From Macrostomum lignano (taxonomy: Eukaryota): a stretch of DNA of 64,000 nucleotides. The stretch lies in NCBI GenBank assembly GCA_002269645.1, contig NIVC01002109.1:78398-142397 (forward strand), in the 5' to 3' direction. The notes below the pieces were generated by a model. That model saw only the letters and a list, made by a program, of their open reading frames with translations. It made no database searches and had not been told where the DNA came from. Of this stretch, positions 1,264 through 44,624 are shown piece after piece (the stretch's first letter is position 1; each line of letters opens with the position of its first letter). The position numbers and the translations under genes are program-made.

Positions 1264-19977
<18,714 letters not shown>

Positions 19978-30054: not shown

Positions 30055-31365
30055 CGAGGGTCACTCAGAAAGTTCTTAGCTTGAACACGAAAACAGCAAC
30101 AAATGAACTAAAAAAAGACTACAAGTGCTCAAAATACTCTCCACCGGCATTGATACAGGCTTGCATCCTGTGAAACCAGCTGTCGAAGCACTGCCGCCAA
30201 TCCTCATCCCGGAGCTCCTCGATGATGTTTTTAAACTCATTCACAGCTTCTTCCGGTGAAGAAAAGACCTGGCCCTTCAGAATCTCCTTGCACTTCGGAA
30301 ACAGAAAAAAGTCGCACGGTGCCAGGTCTGGACTGTAAGCAGGGTGAGTCATCAGCTGGACCCCACAGTCAGCCAGAAACTCCAGAGTTTGAGCCGCCGT
30401 GTGCGCGCTGGCGTTGTCGTGGTGCAGAAGCACCCCACGCATTCCGCACCTTGGGCGCCTCTGGCTCACAGCAGAAAAGACCTTGGGCAGGCAAACCGTT
30501 GTGTACCAGTCAGCGGTGACTGTCTGGCGATCTTCAAGTGAAACGGAAGCCACATGCCCAGTGCGCATGAAGAAACAGGCCACCATCTGCTTGCCGACAC
30601 TCCGGCTGCGTCGAAACTTGGTGGGGCTGTCCTCGTCTCCAAAGGTCCACATGGCTGACTGGCGCTTGCTTTCGGGGTCGTATTGATAAATCCAGGTCTC
30701 ATCGCCCGTGAGGATGTCCCAGATACGCCGGCTGGTCCCGGATTCGAATTTCTGCAGCATGAATCGGCACCAAGCCACCCTGGTGTCCTTCTGCACGTCA
30801 GACAGCTGATGGGGGATCCACCTGGAAGCCAGCTTCCGCACTCCAAGGTGTTCGTGCAGAATGGCGTGCACACTCCCCGATCCAATACCGATCTCCTGCT
30901 GGATCTGCTGGTAGGTCACTCGCCGGTCAGCGGCAATCATGCTGGACACAGCGCAGATATTTTCTGGAGTCACTGCGTCACAGGGTCTCCCGGATCGATG
31001 TTCATCTTCGAGGCTTTCTCGACCTCGGCGAAACTCAGCGAACCAGTTTTTGACGGTTGCGTATGAAGGACATACATGGGTGAAAACGTTCTGTAAAGTT
31101 TGATACGATTCGGCCGGCGACTTGCCTTGCTTGAAGTGCAGGTACATCATTGCTCTGAAGTCGCGATTTTCCAGCTTCATTGTTGAATTGAAGAACTCAG
31201 GGGGGTGAACTGACTTTAACTCGCTGCAGTGGACTCAAAAGTGGCTGCTTCTGTTTGAAATTTTTGCTGCGATACTTTTAAAAGTTGGTCTTTACCATAG
31301 ACAAATTTCATGCTTCTACGTCTCGTGGATCCTACTCAGGCTAAAGACTTTCTGAGTGACCCTCA
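30055..31365 (-). mobile_element. mariner (DD34D) transposon, 1311 bp
   Basis: About 30-bp TIRs, cgagggtcactcagaaagttcttagcttga vs reverse complement tgagggtcactcagaaagtctttagcctga. TA at 30053-30054; the right terminus has lost the final G and TA. Confidence 0.95.
30119..31180 (-). CDS. Intact mariner transposase, 353 aa
   Basis: N-terminal HTH, WIPHQL, TGDETW, LHHDNA and YSPDLAPCDF motifs; no stops or frameshifts. Confidence 0.95.
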   Translation of the reverse strand: MKLENRDFRAMMYLHFKQGKSPAESYQTLQNVFTHVCPSYATVKNWFAEFRRGRESLEDEHRSGRPCDAVTPENICAVSSMIAADRRVTYQQIQQEIGIGSGSVHAILHEHLGVRKLASRWIPHQLSDVQKDTRVAWCRFMLQKFESGTSRRIWDILTGDETWIYQYDPESKRQSAMWTFGDEDSPTKFRRSRSVGKQMVACFFMRTGHVASVSLEDRQTVTADWYTTVCLPKVFSAVSQRRPRCGMRGVLLHHDNASAHTAAQTLEFLADCGVQLMTHPAYSPDLAPCDFFLFPKCKEILKGQVFSSPEEAVNEFKNIIEELRDEDWRQCFDSWFHRMQACINAGGEYFEHL

Positions 31366-32312
31366 ACACAACTTTGGCATCTAAATCGTCGATCTCATGC
31401 TGCAGACTCTACTTGCTACGAGTATGGTTTCAGCTTCCTCCTCCAATCCAAGCAGGTCCAAGCGCTGGTTTCAAGGGATCAAAATAGTTAATGAATGTGA
31501 TATGGGGTCCCAGCAGGCCTCATAAGCTTATAAGTTCTCTGGTCTTTTGCGGGTATCTAAAAAAAGACAAGTGGCTCCTATGCAGTTAGTACTTTGACGC
31601 TAGTATAAATTTTCAAAACAGCAACTTCAGGTATCATCAATCTGAATTCGAGGGATAAGAGTATCGATTGTAAGGTGCTCGAATTCGAGGTCTATCTGGA
31701 TTCATTGCACGGGAGTCCAGCATTGTGACATTGTTCAAATCTGCTGCCTTTACGTTGTCGGCTTGAGCCATTTACCGCAATTTTTTCCCAATAGAGCCGC
31801 TTAATGAGAAGAGTGGATTCTTTGGCTTGGTGTTGCATATCTTTAGTGAAGTCCTTGCGCTTAATAGCGTCCAACAATGGTAGAGGATGTTTGTGAGAGC
31901 CTGACACTGAGTTCACCAGGCCGTCTTTAACTTCAACTTCATGCTCAGCAGTTGCAGCCAGTCAGTTGACACTTGAAGTATAAAACGATTTCTGAAAATG
32001 TAGCTTTTTGTTCCTTCAGATAAATTCAGCCCTTTTATGTGGCCAGCATTGAGCCATTGCGCTTAAAAGAAGTAAAGAGAATTAGGACAGTATTGATTAT
32101 AGATTATACAGATTATACAATCAACCGGTCCTTTTTAAAAAGCAAAAAATCTATGCAATCAATTAAACTTGGATTGCTTAATAAACCAAACAATAGTTAT
32201 TGGAACAGTCATAAAGCCGACACTGTTATGTCGAATATATATGCTGTTATAAATGCCGCAATAAGAAGTATATAAATAAACAAGAGATCATTAAATGAAT
32301 GCTTTTCAGTCT

Positions 32313-35300
32313 ATGGCCGCCTCAACCAATCGTTGCCCAGTAAAAGGCTGCGACTCTCGCGGTCACGTGAATCCCTCAATTAGCCAGCACTGCACCCTGA
32401 CAGCCTGTCCGGCTTATAGAGACCGCACTGGTCAACCCTGCGAGCCAGATTTAAGCCGGGTACCGTTGGAGAATCGCCAATCTTTGCAGCTATTTCGCGA
32501 GGCTCAAAATGCTTTGGCTAGCGACGCTGAACAGGATATGCTGGCCCATTGGCGCATGCTGCCCTCCGAGTATCAGGTGGAACAGGTGGGTGGCGAAAGC
32601 TTTTTATCTACGAGCGTATGGATACTATTCAAGTCTATTCACATTGTTGATCTATGTGTAGATATCTATTATCTAGATTTGTCTAACCGTCTATCTACAG
32701 ATGTCTCTATCCATTCATCTCTGGATGTCTAAATATTTAGATATATCTTTAGATTCTAGATATCTAATATCTATAGACGTCTATATCCCTTCCCTTATCT
32801 AATATCTATAGTCATCTCTATGATTTCCTGTCTGATATCTATAGGCGTCTATGCCCCTTCCGTTATCCAATATCTATAGGCGTCTATATCCCTCATGTGA
32901 TATCTTTAGGCGTCTATATCCCTCATATGTGATATCTTTAGGCGTCTATATCCCTCATATGTAATATCTATAGGCCTCTATATCCCTTCCTTATCTCGCC
33001 TCTTTCTAAGCTCGTAGCATCGCTTCACTTAATATGTTCTTTAACCCTGTCTAATTGTCCTCTTTGTCCCAATACTTTACGTGTCAGAATAAACACAGAA
33101 ATTAGTTTAATGTCAACAGCCTCTAAGGAAGGGAAGGGATATAAGGAAGGGATATAGGCCTCTATATCCCTTCCTTATCTCGCCTCTTTCTAAGCTCGTA
33201 GCATCGCTTCACTTAATATGTTCTTTAACCCTGTCTAATTGTCCTCTTTGTCCCAATACTTTACGTGTCAGAATAAACACAGAAATTAGTTTAATGTCAA
33301 CAAAAAATCGCAGGTTGCCATTGGCAACGCTCTACTAGACGTCTGGTACAAATCCTGCCTGCCGGCCGATCTAGCCTGCGTACCAGTGCTGCACTATTGC
33401 GAATTCTGTCTGGCCTGCTTCACCCAGCGACTGTCCTTGACGAGGCATTCGAGAAAGTGCGCCTGCCGGCATCCGCCCGGTGTGGAGGTCTATCGGGAAG
33501 GTTAGCTTTTGTGAATACTTGATGTCTGATGCTTAGAGTGTGACGGTTCCAAATATTTGGGGTGGCCGCGGTGGTTCAGCAACTGGGGATCTGGTAGGCT
33601 GGCCCAGCAACTGAGAATCTGGGAGGCTGGCCCAGCAACTGAAGATCTGGGAGGCTGGCCCAGCAACTGAAGATCTGGGAGGCTGGTCCAGCAACTGAAG
33701 ATCTGGGAGGCTAGCCCACCAACTGAGGATCTGGGAGGCTGGCTCAGCAACTGAGGATCTGGGAGGCTGGCCCAGTAACTGAGGATCTGGGAGGCTGGCC
33801 CAGCAACTGAGGATCTGGGAGGCTGGCTCAGCAACTGAGGATCTGGGAGGCTGGCCCAGTAACTGAGGATCTGGGAGGCTAGCCCAGCAACTGAGGATCT
33901 GGGAGGCTGGCTCAGCAACTGAGGATCTGGGAGGTTGGCCCAGCAACTGAGGATCTGGGAGGCTGGCAGCCCAGCAACTGAGGATCTGGGAGGCTGGCTC
34001 AGCAACTGAGGATCTGGGAGGCTGGCCTAGCAACTTGAGGATCTGTAATTGTTCAAAGAAAGTGAAACTAGAAATCCGAGTAGATTTGATGAGCCAAAAA
34101 ATAGGTTTGTATTGGTGGAATTGGTGAAGCCAAATATGAAAAAAAACTTTTGTTTCTGTGCTCAAGTTTGACTCTGACTCCAACTGCAATCATTTTTACA
34201 CCGTTTCTTTCTTGCACTGCTGCTGCCCACGCAGGCCAGGTGTCGCTGTTCGAAGTGGACGGCCGGCATTTCCGGGCCTACTGTCAGAGTCTCTGCCGGC
34301 TGGCGAAATTCTTCATTCGTCACAAAACTCTTGTTGAAGGTGTCGAAGCTTTTGTGTTCTACGTGCTGACAGAGGCTGACCAGACTGGGTGTCGCCTGAT
34401 TGGCTACTTCTCTAAGGAGAAGAGATCACTGCTTAATTACAATCTGTCCTGTCTGCTGGTGAGATTCTGCTTGATTTTGTAGTTTGCTTTTCTATTGGCC
34501 TTTGTGAGATTGCTCTAGTCTAGGTTGAGATTCTGAAATCTCTATTATCAAGGGTGAGATTCTGAAATTTCTATTATCTAGGGTGAGATTCTGAACTCTA
34601 ATATTTAGAGTAAGATTCTGAACTCTAATATCTAGGGTTAGATTCTGAAATCTCTATTATCTATGGTGAGATTCTGAAATCTCTATTATCTAGGGTGAGG
34701 TTTCTGAAATCTCTATTATCTAGGCTGAGATTCTGAAATCTCTATAATCAAGGCTGAGATGCTGAAATCTCTATTATCAAGGGTGAGATTCTGAAATCTA
34801 TATTATCTAGAGTGGGATTCTGAAATGTCTATTATCTAGGCTGAGATTCTGAAATCTCTATAATCTAGGGTGAGATTTTGAAATCTCTATTATCTAGGGT
34901 GAGATTCTGAAGTCTCTATAATCTAGGGTGAGATTTTGAAATCTCTATTATCTAGGATGAGATTCTGAAGTCTCTATTATCTAGGGTGAGATTCTTAAAT
35001 CTAACGTAACGTTCCTAAAATACAGTAAGAATTCTCTGAATCCCGATTGAGTTAGTGGAATTGCATTTCCAGGTATTCCCAAACCACATGCGCAAGGGCT
35101 TCGGCTTCCTACTGATCGACCTCAGCTACCGCATCAGCCAGCTGGAGGGCAGCGTCGGGTCGCCCGAGCGGCCGCTATCAGACGCCGGCCTGGCCGCCTA
35201 TCGCAAGTACTGGACTCGAGCCCTGCTCACCAGACTGCTAGAGCATCAGGGCACCGATATTAGCGTTCGCGATCTCAGCCAGGAGACCGGCATTCACGCT

Positions 35301-35514: not shown

Positions 35515-35877
35515 TGTGAGTGTCTGCGTCTGTCTGTGTGTGTCTGTTTGTGTCTGCGTCTGTCTGTGTGTGTCTGTTTGTGTCTGCGTGTGTCTGCGTC
35601 TGTCTGTGTGTGTCTGTCTGTGTGTCTGTCTGTGTGTGTCTGTGTCTGTGTCTGTCTGTGTGTGTCTGTCTGTGTGTGTCTGTCTGTCTGTGTGTCTGCC
35701 TGTGTGTCTGTCTGTGTGTGTGTGTCTGTGTCTGTCTGTGTGTGTCTGTGTCTGTCTGTGTCTATCTCTGTCTGTCTGTGTCTGTGTCTGTCCGTATGTC
35801 TGTCTGTCTGTCTGTCTATCTCTGTGTCTGTCTGTCTGTCTGTCTGTCTCTGTCTGTGTCTGTCTGTCTATCTCTGT

Positions 35878-35911
<34 letters not shown>

Positions 35912-35990
35912 CTGTGTCTGTCTGTCTGTTTGTCTGTCCATCAATGTCTTTGTGTCTGTTGTATTTATCCGTCTGTCTGCCTTTTTGTCT
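35515..35990. repeat. (TG/TCTG)n low-complexity tract after the KAT7 stop
   Basis: Direct reading. Confidence 0.95.
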
Positions 35991-36494: not shown

Positions 36495-36792
36495 AATAAT
36501 TGATTACACCTGTCCTAATGGCCAGATGTGCAACCGACAGCTCAGCCGCAGCTATTGCGTGGCGCATCTGAAGGCTGCGTACGGCTGTTCAGTCCAAGCA
36601 CTGGGGGGTCGCCACACACACCCTCAATTACCCCAGCTAATGCTGGCACCCATTTTACAGCTGGGTAAACTGAAGCAATGCAGAGTTAAGTGTCTTGCTC
36701 AAGGACACAAAGCGTTGTGCGTGGGTGGAGAATCGAACCCCAGACCTTTCAGTCGTGAGTTTGACGCTCTAACCACTAGGCTGCAGGCCCCC
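36495..36792 (-). mobile_element. tRNA-derived CORE-SINE (MIR-like)
   Basis: On the minus strand, A box TAGTGGTTAG and B box GGTTCGATTC, then tgtgtccttgagcaagacacttaac...cagtttacccagctgtaaaatggg, which resembles the MIR/CORE domain consensus as recalled. Confidence 0.8.
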
Positions 36793-36799
36793 TACAACC

Positions 36800-37517
36800 C
36801 CCATAGACTAGCAATCCATACTATTCATAGACTAGCAATCCATACTATTCATAGACTAGCAATCCATACTATTCATAGACTAGCAATCCATACTATTCAT
36901 AGACTAGCAATCCATACTATTCATAGACTAGCAATCCATACTATTCATAGACTAGCAATCCATACTATTCATAGACTAGCAATCCATACTATTCATAGAC
37001 TAGCAATCCATACTATTCATAGACTAGCAATCCATACTATTCATAGACTAGCAATCCATACTATTCATAGACTAGCAATCCATACTATTCATAGACTAGC
37101 AATCCAATTCATAGACTAGCAATCCATACTATTCATAGACTAGCAATCCATACTATTCATAGACTAGCAATCCAATTCATAGACTAGCAATCCATACTAT
37201 TCATAGACTAGCAATCCATACTATTCATAGACTAGCAATCCAATTCATAGACTAGTAATCCAATTCATAAACTAGCAATCCAATTCATAGACTATCAATC
37301 CATACTATTCATAGACTAGCAATCCATACTATTCATAGACTATCAATCCATACTATTCATAGAGTAGCAATCCAGTTCATAGACTAGCAATCCAATTCAT
37401 AGACTAGCAATCCAATTCATAGACTAGCAATCCAATTCATAGACTAGCAATCCAGTTCATAAACTAGCAATCCAATTCATAGACTAGCAATCCAATTCAT
37501 AGACTAGCAATCCAATT
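36800..37517. repeat. 24-bp and 18-bp minisatellite (tagactagcaatccatactattca)
   Basis: Direct reading; between KAT7 and SDHAF3. Confidence 0.95.
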
Positions 37518-37586
37518 AATTAAGTAGCAATATTTTCTATGAATTCAGCAATCCTTGAAACCAGCTATCATTTCCCCCATCCCCAG

Positions 37587-37997
37587 TTCGGTCCAAGTCA
37601 CACCAGTCGGGTTCGTCAGCTGTACAAGCTGATTTTACGCCTGCATCGCTCGTTGCCAGGCGATCTCCGTTCCCTTGGCGACCATTACGCTCGGGCGGAG
37701 TTTCGTCGGCATTTGAATTGCACCGAGCCGCAGGCTGCCGAGTTCATGCTGCAGTGGGCGGATTACGCCTCCGTGCTTAGCAGGCAGATTAGCGACAGTT
37801 TAAAAGAAGCCGACAGATCTCTAATTGGTTCCTCTGCTAATCTTCAGTCTCCCATAGCAACCGTTGCTAATGAAAATTCTACGAGTTCGTATGGCGTCTG
37901 TTTAAATCGACAACAATTGGATCATCTGGCCGACCATCAATTGGCTCAATTGTTTGAATTGTACAAGCATACTACTAATAGTACTAGTACTCACTGA
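37587..37997 (+). CDS. SDHAF3: Succinate dehydrogenase assembly factor 3 (ACN9, LYR family); the ORF is open from ATG 37539 but homology starts at the acceptor 37586
   Basis: SHTSRVRQLYKLILRLHRSLPGDLRSLGDHYARAEFRRH matches the SDHAF3 N-terminus ([38 protein letters not shown]). Confidence 0.9.
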   Translation, partial: FGPSHTSRVRQLYKLILRLHRSLPGDLRSLGDHYARAEFRRHLNCTEPQAAEFMLQWADYASVLSRQISDSLKEADRSLIGSSANLQSPIATVANENSTSSYGVCLNRQQLDHLADHQLAQLFELYKHTTNSTSTH

Positions 37998-38129
37998 TTG
38001 CGATGTTTTTTTCAGTGTCACAACTTGTTACATTAATTTTTTAGTTTGCATAATAATTTACTGGTTGCGACTCTTATTGTGTTGAGCATAGGAAACTAGA
38101 CAAATGTCGATTGCAGTCCCGGCAATCTT

Positions 38130-39080
38130 CACCCTCCTAAAGTTTTAATTCTGGAAATCTCACCCTCCTAAAGTTATAATTCTGGAAATCTCACCCTCCT
38201 AAAGTTATAATTCTGGAAATCTCACCCTCCTATAGTTATAATTCTGGAAATCTCACCCTCCTAAAGTTATAATTCTGGAAATCTCACCCTCCTAAAGTTA
38301 TAATTCTGGAAATCTCACCCTCCTAAAGTTATAATTCTGGAAATCTCAGCCCCTCTTAGATTTATGATTCTGGAAATCTCACCCTCCTATATTTATGATT
38401 CCGGAAATCTCAGCCCCTCTTAGATTTATGATTCTGGAAATCTCACCCTCCTAGATTTATGATTCCGGAATTTCACCCTCTCACATTGACGATTCCAGAA
38501 ATCTCACCCTTTTAGATTTATGATTCCAGAAATCTCACCCCTCTAGATTTCTGATTCCGCAAATCTCACCCTTCTAGATTTACGATTCCGGAAATCTCAC
38601 CCTTTTAGATTTATGACTCCGCAAATTTCACCCTCCTAGATTTATGATTCCGGAAATCTCACCCTCCTAGATTTATGATTCCGGAAATCTCACCCTCCTA
38701 GATTTATGGAAATCTCACCCTTCTAAATTTATGATTCCGGAAATCTCACCCTTCTAGATTTATGATTCCGGAAATCTCACCCTTCTAGATTTATGGAAAT
38801 CTCACCCTTCTAAATTTATGATTCCGGAAATCTCACCCTTCTAGATTTATGATTCCGGAAATCTCACCCTTCTAGATTTATGATTCCGGAAATCTCACCC
38901 TTCTAGATTTATGATTCCGGAAATCTCACCCTTCTAGATTTATGATTCTGGAAATCTCACCCTTCTAGATTTATGATTCCGGAAATCTCACCCTTCTAGA
39001 TTTATGATTCCGGAAATCCAATTCTTTGTAGATTTATGATTCTGGAAATCTCACCCTTCTAGATTTTTATTCCGGAAATC
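38130..39080. repeat. 31-bp minisatellite (gaaatctcacccttctagatttatgattccg)
   Basis: Direct reading; between SDHAF3 and ELP5. Confidence 0.95.
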
Positions 39081-39874
39081 TCCTACTACATCTAAGTCAC
39101 AAAATTACATGTTTCGCTTTCGTTGTTTAACGTCTCTTTCGATTTGCGGAGATAAATTCAAAGAGTCGCAGGTGGAGGTTTTGATTTCGATTTTTCGTTG
39201 CTAATATTCTTTATTTTAAACTTTTAAACTTATTATCTTTCGTTTAATATTGATGTAAAACTTTAGCAGTAGAAGCATTAGTTACTACTGGTAGTGGTGT
39301 GTTATTTTTACACATTACCGTATAAATTACACTTTATCGCATGTTGCTGTGTTTGATGAAGTGAAAGGATCAGTCCATGGTAGATCTAACTAAAATCTAT
39401 TTCGGTAACAACTATGGAACACTTTTTAAGCTTGAATCAATTATTATTAATGAATAATTTGTGATGTATAATTAAACTGCCTGCATACCCTTATTTACCT
39501 TTTGTAGGTCTTTTACTATAAATGGAAATAGAAATTCTGTTTTTTCACTGTGCGGTTTTTAAAAAATTAACAGCAGAAAATTGTGTAAAAATTTCTGTTG
39601 GCCTTATTAACGAATAAAAATATCCTAACATTTGCGACACTAGCTATTCTTTTAGAGGCACAAATCCAAATGGTTAAATTCGTCATATGTAAGTTATATA
39701 AGCTCAATTTGTTGTAAAGAAAACCAATTATAAATCTTATAAATTGATCCATTGCTCAACAATTAACATTATTAAACGTGTTTCTGCGATTTTTTTCATA
39801 GACTTCTATATTAAAATGCGTTTTGTAATTACTTATTGGTTTTGTTCTAAAAATAGTTTTCTGTTTGCTTGCTA

Positions 39875-40894: not shown

Positions 40895-41869
40895 ATGCCT
40901 CAGGTAGTATTATCTGACAAGTCGGAAGCGCTGCTGGCGGCAGCTCTTAGGGAGCCGGGCATCGTGACCTGTTTTGCCCAATCTCATGGCCGCTTAGAAT
41001 GCCTAGCAGCTGCCCTATCCTCCCTAGCAACCGCTTCAGCGTCCTTAGCAACCGTCTCGCCGTCCAAGCGTCAAACATTGGCATTGCATCTCGGCATTGA
41101 TTCGCGCCTATCAGTTGCTATGCACTGCTCTGAGGAGCTTCAACTCATCAACTGTCTGGAGGCGGATCTGTCCAAGACTCGAACTCGCGTTCTTCGCGAA
41201 TCTTTAGCCGCCAGTCGTCAAGGTGGTTTCGTAGTCCTATATCCGATTGGTCCCCTGCTGCAGATTCTTCAAGTTGAACAGCTTATTCAATTAGCAACGC
41301 TATTGGTTGCTAAGCAATCTTGTACGGTTGCTATGGTCATTGATCAAAGCTCGATTTCCGATTCAGATGCCGATTTGTTGCTAAGCTCAGCTGCTACTGT
41401 CGTACACGCAGATAATAGTCAACAGCTAACAGACAAAGCCGGTTGCGGTGGCTTCCAATTAGAAGTTGAGCGCCGTCTCTTGAGCGGAAAAATGCCAACG
41501 GAACGATTGCGGTTGCTATGCAACGCTGGGCGCTATAATTTACCGGCTAGGCTGTTTCTGCGCAGAGATGAAGTCGCTGAAGTCGCCGAAGCAACAGCAG
41601 GGGAGGAGGATAAAGAGAAATCTTTGAGCACTTCCGCTTCCGGTCAATCGGGAGCTGCTGCCATGGACTCATTGACTTCATTCCGGCTAGGCCTAACTAC
41701 GCAGGAAGTTAAAGAACGCGCCGATGTTGTGCTGCCTCATCATCGGCCAATTGAATCTTCTACTCATGCTACTAATAATAGAAGAGAAGGAGGAGGCCGC
41801 ATAGATTACTGCCCGCAGCCTGAGGACGACTGGGATGACGAGGATCCCGATGACGATTTGGGAATCTGA
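40895..41869 (+). CDS. ELP5: Elongator complex protein 5, single exon, 324 aa
   Basis: C-terminal SFRLGLTTQEVKERADVVLPH and IDYCPQPEDDWDDEDPDDDLGI match the ELP5 signature ending in DPDDDL(D/G)I. Confidence 0.85.
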   Translation: MPQVVLSDKSEALLAAALREPGIVTCFAQSHGRLECLAAALSSLATASASLATVSPSKRQTLALHLGIDSRLSVAMHCSEELQLINCLEADLSKTRTRVLRESLAASRQGGFVVLYPIGPLLQILQVEQLIQLATLLVAKQSCTVAMVIDQSSISDSDADLLLSSAATVVHADNSQQLTDKAGCGGFQLEVERRLLSGKMPTERLRLLCNAGRYNLPARLFLRRDEVAEVAEATAGEEDKEKSLSTSASGQSGAAAMDSLTSFRLGLTTQEVKERADVVLPHHRPIESSTHATNNRREGGGRIDYCPQPEDDWDDEDPDDDLGI

Positions 41870-42339
41870 CAAGTTTTTTAACTGCATTGGCTTTGCTTTT
41901 GCTTTGATCTGACCTGTGTAAAGTAATCAAATATACTACTGGCATTGTAAGATTACAATTAGAAAATATACTTCCCACTGCATTCTTTATTGCCGTTTGG
42001 ACTTCCTATTTATCTTTGAATAATTCCATGTTGATTTAAGCTTAATATCTATTTAAATAATTCCCATCTGAGCTTCTCATTCAGCTGATAAATAATTCCC
42101 TTCTGAGCTTCTCATTCATCTGATGAATAATTTCCATCTGAGCTTCTCATTCATCTGATGAATAATTCCCATCTGAGCTTCTTAGTCTTAGAAATAATTC
42201 CCCTATAAGCAGCGGTATAATTTGATTTGCCAACCTATCAACTTATTTTAAAAATTAACGACTAAAAACGATTTCAGGTTAATATAAAAATCTTGCATTA
42301 TAATTGATTCACTTTTCACTGCTGGCCCGAAATGCCCGC

Positions 42340-44624
42340 ATGCGGTTAACGCTGACCAGGCTTGCTGCTGCCGCTGGGGGCACCGCAGGCGGCGGCGGCG
42401 GAGGCGGCGGCAATCGGTTGAAGCGGCTCCGTCAGCTGACCGGCCGGTCTCTGCTGGATTGCCGGCAGGCCCTGGCAGCCTGCGGTCACAACATTGACGC
42501 GGCTGTTGGCTGGTTAAAGAGAAGCTCGGCTTGCGGCATTTCTGCCCAGGAGCAGCCCGTCGCTGCTGGCGCTGACGATCGGCGGCGAGGCGAGAAAGCT
42601 GCGTTGAAAAGACGGCAAAAGCCGGCGAGGCACGGCCTGCTGGGCGTCTCTGTGCTGCAGCTGCCGCTGCGATTGCCTCAGCAAGCACGGTGAATACAAC
42701 TTTGTGTTGCAAGTGTTTTGTGTGTGTGTCTTGACTCTCAGTTGTTGGGCCAGCCTCCCAGATCCTCAGTTGCTGGGCCAGCCTCCCAGAGTGTCAATTG
42801 CTGGGCCACCAGCCTCCCAAATCCTCAGTTGCTGGGCCAGCCTTCCAGATCCTCAGTTGCTGGGCCAGCCTCCCAAATCCTCAGTTGCTGGGCCAGCCTC
42901 CCAGATCCTCAGTTGCTGGGCCAGCCTCCCAGAGTGTCAATTGCTGGGCCACCAGCCTCCCAAATCCTCAGTTGCTGGGCCAGGCTCCCAAATCCTCAGT
43001 TGCTGGACCAGCCTCCCAGATACTCAGTTGCTGGGCCACCAGCCTCCCAAATCCTCAGTTGCTGGGCCAGCCTCCCAAATCCTCAGTTGCTGGACCAGCC
43101 TTCCAGATTGTTAGTTGCTGGGCTACTCAGTTCAATAATTAACCTGCGCTCCACTTCCCCAGCCGCCAAGCTGCATCACCGCAGCAGTCAGCAGCCACAG
43201 CCGTAGTTGTTGAACTCCGCTGTCAAACAGAATTCGCGGCCCGCAATCAGCTGTTCCAGCTGCTCCTGTCCACCGCCTGCCAAGCCGTCATGACATCGGT
43301 GCTGGCCGCAGACTCCGGCTCGGGTGGTGCGCTGCCGCCAGCCATAATTCTGTCTCCAGATCGACTTTTATCCCTGACCGTGCCAGCTGCGGCTAGCCGG
43401 GATTCCCATCGCGAGTCTGCAGCGCCCGCATCATCGGTGCTGACCATTGCCGACGCTCTGGCGGAGACGGCTTCAAGGATTGGTGAACGATTGACGCTGA
43501 TCCGAGGATTGGCGTTCACGGCTCCGGCTGGGACCAAACTGGCCGTGTACTGCCACCCACTCGAGAGCTGGCATTTGCAGCACAAGCAGATTGCTAAGTG
43601 CGTGCTCGGGGGTTATTTGTGCCGTTCTATAGCTGGGATTTTATTCCCCTTTGTATGGCTGGGATTTTATTCCCCTTGATGTCTTTCATAGCTGGGATTT
43701 TATTCCCATTAGTGTCTCTCATAGCTGGGATTTTATTCCCCTTTTTATGGCTGGGATTTTATTCCCATTAGTGTCTCATAGCTGGGATTTTATTCCCCTT
43801 TGTATGGCTGGGATTTTATTTCCCTTGGTGTCTTTCATAGCTGGGTTTTATTCCCCTTAGTGTCTTTCATAGCTGGGATTTTATTCCCCTTAGTGTCTTT
43901 CATAGCTGGGATTTTATTCCCCTTAGTGTCTTTCATAGCTGGGTTTTATTCCCCTTAGTGTCTTTCATAGCTGGGTTTTATTTCCCTTAGTGTCTTTCAT
44001 AGCTGGGTTTTATTTCCCTTAGTGTCTTTCATAGCTGGGATTTTATTTCCCTTAGTGTCTTTCATAGCTGGCTTTTATTCCCCTAACTTACTTCCCCATC
44101 GGAGGGATCATTGCTAGATCAATAAACTGCCTAACATTGCTTACTAGAGTGCCCAAATCAACCCGTAGGCTATAAAATGTGCACCCAATGAACTCTTCAT
44201 CAGGCCCGGCAGCACGGCACCATCGGCCAGCATCGGCCAGGGCTCCCCTCTGCAGCAGCAGCAGCCGCCGCCGGCTCCAACAATATTCGCTCGCTACGCA
44301 GCCGGTGTAGCATATCAGCTGCTCGCCGCCGAGCAGAAGCACAGACAGCAGCAGCAGCAGGCGGCTGCAGAGGCTGCTAGACGACTCGCTCAGCACGTGG
44401 TCGGCATGCGGCCCAGGTGTGTCGGAATCGACCCCACCGCTGCCGCCACTAGCTCCGCCGGTTTCAACGACGAGCGCCGATTCGAACTTCAGCCATTCCT
44501 ATTGGACGAGACGGTCACGGCTGGGGAATGGGCAGCGTCGCGGGGTATTCGGGTTGTCGATTTTTTTCGCGCCCAATCGGCGCCGCCTTCGTCAATCGAC
44601 GTGTCGATTGGGAGCGTCGGCTAA
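42340..44624 (+). CDS. TSFM: Mitochondrial elongation factor Ts; exons 42340-42689, 43163-43597, 44204-44624 (1206 nt)
   Basis: LKRLRQLTGRSLLDCRQAL...AVGWL (UBA-like domain), VVVELRCQTEFAARN, IGERLTLIRG, LAQHVVGMRP and QPFLLD...VVDFFR. Both introns are phase 2 GT-AG and the frame closes. Confidence 0.88.
42735..43130 (-). repeat. 28-bp minisatellite (agcctcccagatcctcagttgctgggcc) in TSFM intron 1
   Basis: The unit is the exact reverse complement of the 33575-34045 unit. Confidence 0.95.

Follow-up and report, generated by a model that had tools for sequence, protein, structure and literature searches.

The 64,000-nucleotide stretch of Macrostomum lignano DNA analysed here (the window) contains, in this order, a KAT7-like gene and the genes SDHAF3, ELP5 and TSFM. 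The SDHAF3 coding sequence is a single exon on the plus strand (37587..37997), defined by translation, by Pfam and by a deposited gene model, which comprises 136 codons and a TGA stop (37995-37997) and lacks an ATG at its start. Its product matched the Pfam family Complex1_LYR_2 with 63.5 bits against a gathering cut-off of 22.3 (E = 3e-17), and a HMMER scan gave 697 relatives at E <= 0.001, mostly unnamed, with a named one from Opisthorchis viverrini described as 'Succinate dehydrogenase assembly factor 3' (P0032, E = 3.7e-13). With the SDHAF3/ACN9/LYRM10 family the product shares the Complex1_LYR_2 domain, the L-Y-K and H-R-x-L-P blocks, the E-F, the W and the C-terminal LxxxQLxQLxEL, and it differs from the family in having no genomic initiator codon at the usual position. 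L28, Y29, K30 and F55 (numbered on a 152-residue product that includes an N-terminal extension, see below) are all present, with L28, Y29 and F55 invariant in a 12-sequence alignment, and the H-R-x-L-P block is invariant or nearly so among SDHAF3 homologues in the multiple alignment. On these sequence features the assignment to SDHAF3, rather than to another LYRM protein, holds. The closest relative outside M. lignano (P0002) was 46% identical, including a C-terminal LGVxLxxQQLDxLADHQ segment, and no relative was found among the solved structures of the PDB. The M. lignano gene has no intron, in contrast to several homologues, whose contigs carry one after E-W-T.

The exon starts at 37587 in phase 0, where the plus strand reads tttcccccatccccAG|TTC GGT CCA AGT CAC. 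Immediately 5' of it lies a candidate spliced leader (SL) trans-splice site (37565..37586, plus strand) made up of a polypyrimidine tract and a CAG acceptor with its AG at 37585-37586. Pyrimidines occupy 16 of the 19 bases upstream of this CAG; across the window, with both strands counted, only 0.42% of 8,551 AG dinucleotides reach that number. The acceptor hexamer CCCCAG is one position off the motif [T/C]TNCAG enriched at M. lignano trans-acceptors (PMC8629364). Neither of two further AGs just 5' of the acceptor (37547-37548 and 37563-37564) is in frame. Alignments of the 136-residue product to its homologues by phmmer begin at residues 1-4, so that the coordinates, the rank of the pyrimidine tract and the alignments all confirmed the original prediction that homology sets in directly after a strong acceptor in phase 0. 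It had also placed the next ATG far into the domain, and the sequence agrees: the only in-frame ATGs near the exon are at 37539..37541 and 37746..37748, and no ATG in any frame lies in the intervals separating 36678 from 37539 and 37539 from 37746. The second of the two is codon 54 of 136 and sits inside the Pfam LYR domain, 3' of the LYK tripeptide and the H-R-x-L-P block; a start there would lose LYK and half of the domain. The first is a rival start that adds 16 codons (MNSAILETSYHFPHPQ, ending in the tttcccccatccccAG text) with no intervening stop and gives a product of 152 residues, and the nearest in-frame stop 5' of the exon is a TAA at 37521..37523.

The region around the rival ATG is dominated by repeats. 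A 24-nt satellite array of 31.7 copies with 93% matches (36802..37514, plus strand) fills the presumed outron or intergenic space and contains no ATG and almost no GT. The next 58 bases (37515..37572), in which ATG 37539 lies, gave a local alignment score of 34 against the satellite, compared with 16.5 +/- 4.3 for shuffled sequences, only one in 2,000 of which reached 34, and are read as three decayed copies of the upstream unit (24/20-nt). The 16 extra residues are therefore encoded by satellite debris together with the pyrimidine tract of the splice signal; the number of residues had been predicted correctly. When the 99 bases 5' of the acceptor were shuffled, an in-frame ATG with its frame open to the acceptor arose in 13% of cases, and the ATG at 37539 is thus unremarkable. 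GC content at third codon positions did not differ between the extension (8/16) and the coding sequence (67/136), and only the G content rises sharply at 37587. A second satellite lies on the other side of the gene (38119-39082; 31-nt unit, 31.4 copies, 88% matches), and both flanking arrays also occur at the paralogous locus described below.

M. lignano has a single SL of 35 nt, CGGTCTCTTACTGCGAAGACTCAATTTATTGCATG, which terminates in ATG and contains no other ATG; it is trans-spliced to about 30% of genes and to 45% of those conserved with human (PMC8629364). All flatworm SLs reported end in AUG, and Macrostomum authors already term the final ATG of the leader a translation start codon, so that the literature bears out the earlier statement that flatworm leaders end in an AUG usable as an initiator. 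A search of the window with the last 12-35 nt of the SL revealed neither a gene for the SL RNA nor a leftover of the leader. Read behind the leader, the SDHAF3 exon gives AUG|UUC GGU CCA, with a codon boundary at the junction and no stop between the AUG and the reading frame. The putative SL-exon junction is ...TTATTGCATG|TTCGGTCCAAGTCAC, and the genome-colinear sequence across the acceptor is CATCCCCAG|TTCGGTCC; the corresponding predicted N-terminal peptides are MFGPSHTSR for a start at the SL AUG and MNSAILETSYHFPHPQFGPSHTSR for the longer, genomic-ATG product.

The deposited model (P0001), encoded on NIVC01002109.1 of the annotated assembly GCA_002269645.1 (Mlig_3_7), is 136 residues long, identical to the exon product, begins at F with no Met, and spans 37587-37997. 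For this annotation, transcripts were assembled on the genome and cut at peaks of SL-bearing reads (TBONE), and reading frames were called by TransDecoder. With the frame closed by the TAA at 37521, a short way upstream, any transcript extending to 37539 should have yielded a complete 152-residue ORF; the coding sequence is annotated from 37587 without a Met, and the 5' end of the annotated mRNA therefore falls at 37585-37587, at the acceptor. This start makes an SL site at that position considerably more probable and is the strongest indirect support for SL joining at the SDHAF3 acceptor. It is good evidence and not conclusive, because other 5'-partial models in the same annotation (ELP5 in the window, and the paralogous KAT7 and ELP5) do not start exactly at acceptors. 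In a collection of 15 billion proteins only the 136-residue model was found, with no exact match to either the 137-residue SL-AUG product or the 152-residue genomic-ATG product, and the M. lignano supplements searched gave no SDHAF3/ACN9 entry.

The N-terminus offers a separate comparison. Aligned together, most relatives place their Met on the codon that the acceptor CAG occupies in M. lignano, and the 16-residue extension has no counterpart in any aligned homologue. We took the 143 best Met-starting relatives that aligned from their N-terminus and counted the residues preceding the position aligned to F1. One residue was the commonest value (25 proteins) and also the median, with zero next in frequency (22 proteins); the SL-AUG model has 1 such residue and a start at the genomic ATG has 16, with at least 14 found in only 12% of the 143 homologues. 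The expectation that the SL AUG followed by FGPSHTSRVR would restore an N-terminus of orthologue-like length was thus upheld, this being the modal length of the family, and one relative (P0020) begins MFPPNHSPRVR, to be compared with (M)FGPSHTSRVR in the predicted M. lignano product. The transcripts of the closest relative outside M. lignano, P0002 (Logan contigs L002/L003; SRR31412049, SRR31412026), assembled as short contigs, have an ATG of their own behind a leader longer than 100 nt, and nothing resembling an SL at the 5' end.

A paralogous locus (L005; NIVC01000861.1:152025-172759) repeats the gene order KAT7-SDHAF3-ELP5-TSFM, with a minus-strand gene next in line, and its SDHAF3 region is about 97-98% identical to the window. 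The SDHAF3 copy (positions 5695-6153 of that locus) is intact, with 148/152 identities including the extension and TAA in place of TGA as its stop. It has no gene model; for KAT7 the reverse is true, with a model in the paralogue and none in the window, and the N-terminal exon of the window KAT7 used as a query matched no protein model. The paralogue of a neighbouring gene is named 'BOX15_Mlig015035g5, partial [Macrostomum lignano]'. Upstream of SDHAF3 the paralogous locus keeps the ATG, the open frame, the tract and the CAG, and in 72 nt it differs once, with G in place of C at the position that corresponds to 37574. Since no change separates the first 43 codons either, the paralogue is uninformative on whether the extension is coding. 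Between the two SDHAF3 coding sequences we counted 8.5 synonymous changes and 3.5 non-synonymous ones (pN/pS 0.12), so that the gene is under purifying selection and is not taken for a pseudogene.

Taking together the anatomy of the site, its frame, the leader of the species, the annotated start, the fit of the N-terminus and the purifying selection, we infer that the leader is joined at the SDHAF3 acceptor and that ribosomes start at its AUG. The main start of SDHAF3 is, on this sequence evidence, probably the AUG that ends the trans-spliced SL, joined at 37586|37587. In the proposed course of events, the intronless gene, its own initiator codon replaced by a trans-splice acceptor, would be transcribed from a promoter 5' of the satellite or else by read-through from the same-strand KAT7-like gene 2.1 kb upstream. 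The pre-mRNA would be cut at CAG|TTC (37586|37587) and joined to the 35-nt SL, whose terminal AUG would stand in frame before UUC GGU CCA, 32 nt of leader from the cap, as the first and only nearby AUG. Translation from there would give a SDHAF3 of 137 residues, M-FGPSHTSRVRQLYK..., with an N-terminus typical of the family. Once trans-splicing at 37587 is granted, there would be hardly any alternative to the SL AUG, since a start at the next AUG would cost the protein its LYK motif.

Three other accounts of the same start were weighed. The one that survives best, though we consider it unlikely, holds that the mRNA is unspliced, with a transcription start in or just 3' of the satellite, that translation begins at ATG 37539 to give 152 residues, and that the annotated start at 37587 is a truncated model. 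The ATG is in frame, without an intervening stop, and the first to follow an ATG-free stretch of 860 nt; the paralogue retains both it and the open frame, truncated 5' ends do exist in this annotation, and about 12% of the homologues have N-terminal extensions of comparable size (at least 14 residues). Against these points, a chance truncation would have to land within 3 nt of the strongest acceptor of the region, the extension consists of decayed satellite and pyrimidine tract and is unmatched in the aligned homologues, the frequency of such ATGs among the shuffles makes its presence unremarkable, and it has T at position -3, whereas the SL AUG has G there.

Slightly less likely again is a mixture of the two forms, in which most transcripts are trans-spliced and start at the SL AUG while an unspliced minority uses ATG 37539 as a fallback, with no strict dependence on trans-splicing. 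Ribosomes on any transcript begun in the satellite would meet this AUG first, and its conservation in the paralogue does not speak against such a role; the annotation, however, contains no unspliced isoform that includes the outron. Very improbable is a cis acceptor at 37586, with the ATG, or an ATG-bearing 5' UTR, supplied by an unannotated upstream exon, exons within KAT7 included: acceptors of flatworms can serve both cis- and trans-splicing according to the literature, and two GT[AG]AG matches lie upstream (35516 and 36755 only), but neither has an open phase-0 ATG, and between the KAT7 stop (35489) and the acceptor the 17 ATGs form 26 phase-0 ATG...|GT combinations, none of them with a consensus donor. 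The last 785 nt before the acceptor hold five GT dinucleotides, none in a GT[AG]AG context. The search for a donor-bearing ATG micro-exon that the original prediction had proposed as a check has thus been run, and between the KAT7 stop and acceptor 37586 it turned up no usable ATG-bearing phase-0 exon with a GT[AG]AG donor.

Returning to the SL AUG as the preferred start, the further step of making translation depend on trans-splicing, as had been suggested, can be followed only in part. A start at the leader AUG is likely, but strict dependence is too strong a statement, because unspliced RNA could make use of ATG 37539, an in-frame codon that the paralogue retains and that no other ATG precedes for 860 nt. 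As to how the arrangement arose, we lean, by a small margin, towards a history in which the ancestral SDHAF3 ATG was replaced in the Macrostomum lineage by the acceptor CAG at the same codon, leaving a gene that now depends on trans-splicing.

The acceptors of the neighbouring genes KAT7 and ELP5 had been cited as likewise in frame for an SL AUG. The arithmetic is right, but these claims are weak, since each of the two genes has a genomic ATG. The KAT7-like gene (Pfam zf-C2HC and MOZ_SAS) has its first coding exon behind the acceptor ttttcAG (AG at 32308-32309; feature 32303..32315, plus strand) and reads TCT ATG GCC, with its own ATG (32313) one codon in and another in-frame ATG upstream at 32295; the paralogous KAT7 model starts 9 nt 3' of the same acceptor. 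At ELP5 (Pfam Elong_Iki1; deposited model of 323 residues) the start region (40895..40903, plus strand) consists of an ATG at 40895-40897, an annotated coding sequence from 40898 and a candidate AG at 40902-40903. The model begins one codon past the genomic ATG, the preceding dinucleotide is TG and not AG, and the annotated coding sequence includes six bases that would be outron if the AG at 40903 marked the 5' end; from the coding start at 40898 it follows that the annotated mRNA 5' end cuts through, or lies just behind, the gene's own start codon. One idea for this oddity is that SL reads may have been multi-mapped from a paralogue that has an AG there. The paralogous ELP5 model is itself truncated by 240 nt. 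We also tried ELP5 as a retrocopy that had fossilised an SL ATG and rejected it, as the best local alignment to the SL scored 14 against a window background of 21-23. Any one site is in frame by chance in a third of cases, and three in-frame sites out of three (KAT7, ELP5 and SDHAF3) would occur about once in 27, which is too weak for a pattern to be read from them. At TSFM, an acceptor-like gatttcAG (AG at 42276-42277) precedes the start ATG at 42340, and an out-of-frame ATG is found at 42332; read from the sequence, an SL joined at 42276-42277 would open a 10-codon uORF (MVNIKILHYN*) before the TSFM ATG.

Initiation at the SL AUG has been established in flatworms since 2006, when Cheng, Cohen, Ndegwa and Davis (J Biol Chem) reported it for Schistosoma mansoni and S. 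japonicum. For S. mansoni, Cheng et al. (2006) put the share of trans-spliced transcripts with an in-frame SL AUG at 28%, close to one third, with more than 40 cDNAs depending on it to be initiated correctly. It was extended to Echinococcus granulosus and reported as conserved across Neodermata (PMC3510090). SDHAF3 resembles the class described in 2006 in its AUG-terminated leader, its phase-0 acceptor, the lack of an AUG in the exon near the 5' end, and an N-terminus that matches the orthologues only when the SL AUG is used. Like the E. granulosus NADH-ubiquinone oxidoreductase subunit and COX6B (PMC3510090), SDHAF3 is a small, conserved housekeeping mitochondrial protein. Unlike that class, it comes from a free-living macrostomorph and not from a parasitic neodermatan, it is known here from sequence and annotation, and its outron still contains a genomic ATG, in frame and 16 codons upstream. 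In the slORFs reported with slORFfinder (PMC9851317) the leader likewise supplies the start codon of an ORF, but for SDHAF3 the leader start would open the main conserved ORF and not an alternative one. In the literature searched, we found no paper naming SDHAF3 in this context and none counting the M. lignano genes that depend on the SL AUG.

The SL-AUG mechanism is thus already known in flatworms, and what is new is SDHAF3 as a candidate case, in a free-living species; it opens no new kind of biology. If it is confirmed, the deposited 'partial' SDHAF3 model would be complete apart from a leader-encoded Met, and the same correction would probably fit many other 5'-partial gene models of M. 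lignano. A core mitochondrial assembly factor would have ceded its start codon to the SL, and the leader AUG would act as an initiator in Macrostomorpha, beyond the parasitic flatworms where this has been demonstrated. Such an early-branching, free-living example would argue that initiator use explains the conserved terminal AUG of flatworm leaders. M. lignano is tractable for transgenesis, and a reporter test of the case is therefore feasible.

Like genes in downstream positions of M. lignano operons (Ustyantsev and Berezikov 2021, PMC8629364), SDHAF3 has an upstream neighbour on the same strand, the KAT7-like gene, and it may be fed by read-through from it. Tandem repeats account for 1,131 of the 2,097 nt that separate the two genes; with these subtracted about 966 nt remain, only marginally under the repeat-adjusted operon criterion of 1 kb, and the distance is far above the 100-bp mode of M. 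lignano operons (PMC8629364). Directly 3' of the KAT7 stop, the spacer holds a (GTCT)n-type microsatellite of about 418 nt (35521-35938). Further along, within about 36500-36800, the stretch 36717-36788 looks like a reverse-complemented tRNA (...GGTGGAGAATCGAACCCCAGACC...CTCTAACCACTAGGC...) and may be, by its sequence, a tRNA-derived SINE in antisense orientation; ARAGORN found no tRNA, and Rfam gave only a sub-threshold match to Plastid-ycf2 5'UTR RNA (28.5 bits against a gathering threshold of 65.7) and nothing at the gathering threshold across the window. Elsewhere in the window, the region 4001-6000 has 64% G+C, a strongly negative GC skew and a number of long, overlapping ORFs, the largest of 476 aa, without a Pfam match. 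Just upstream of the KAT7-like gene, and missing from the gene list, a minus-strand ORF of 353 aa (30119-31180) carries Mos1/mariner transposase domains (HTH_48, 6e-12; Transposase_1; DDE_3).
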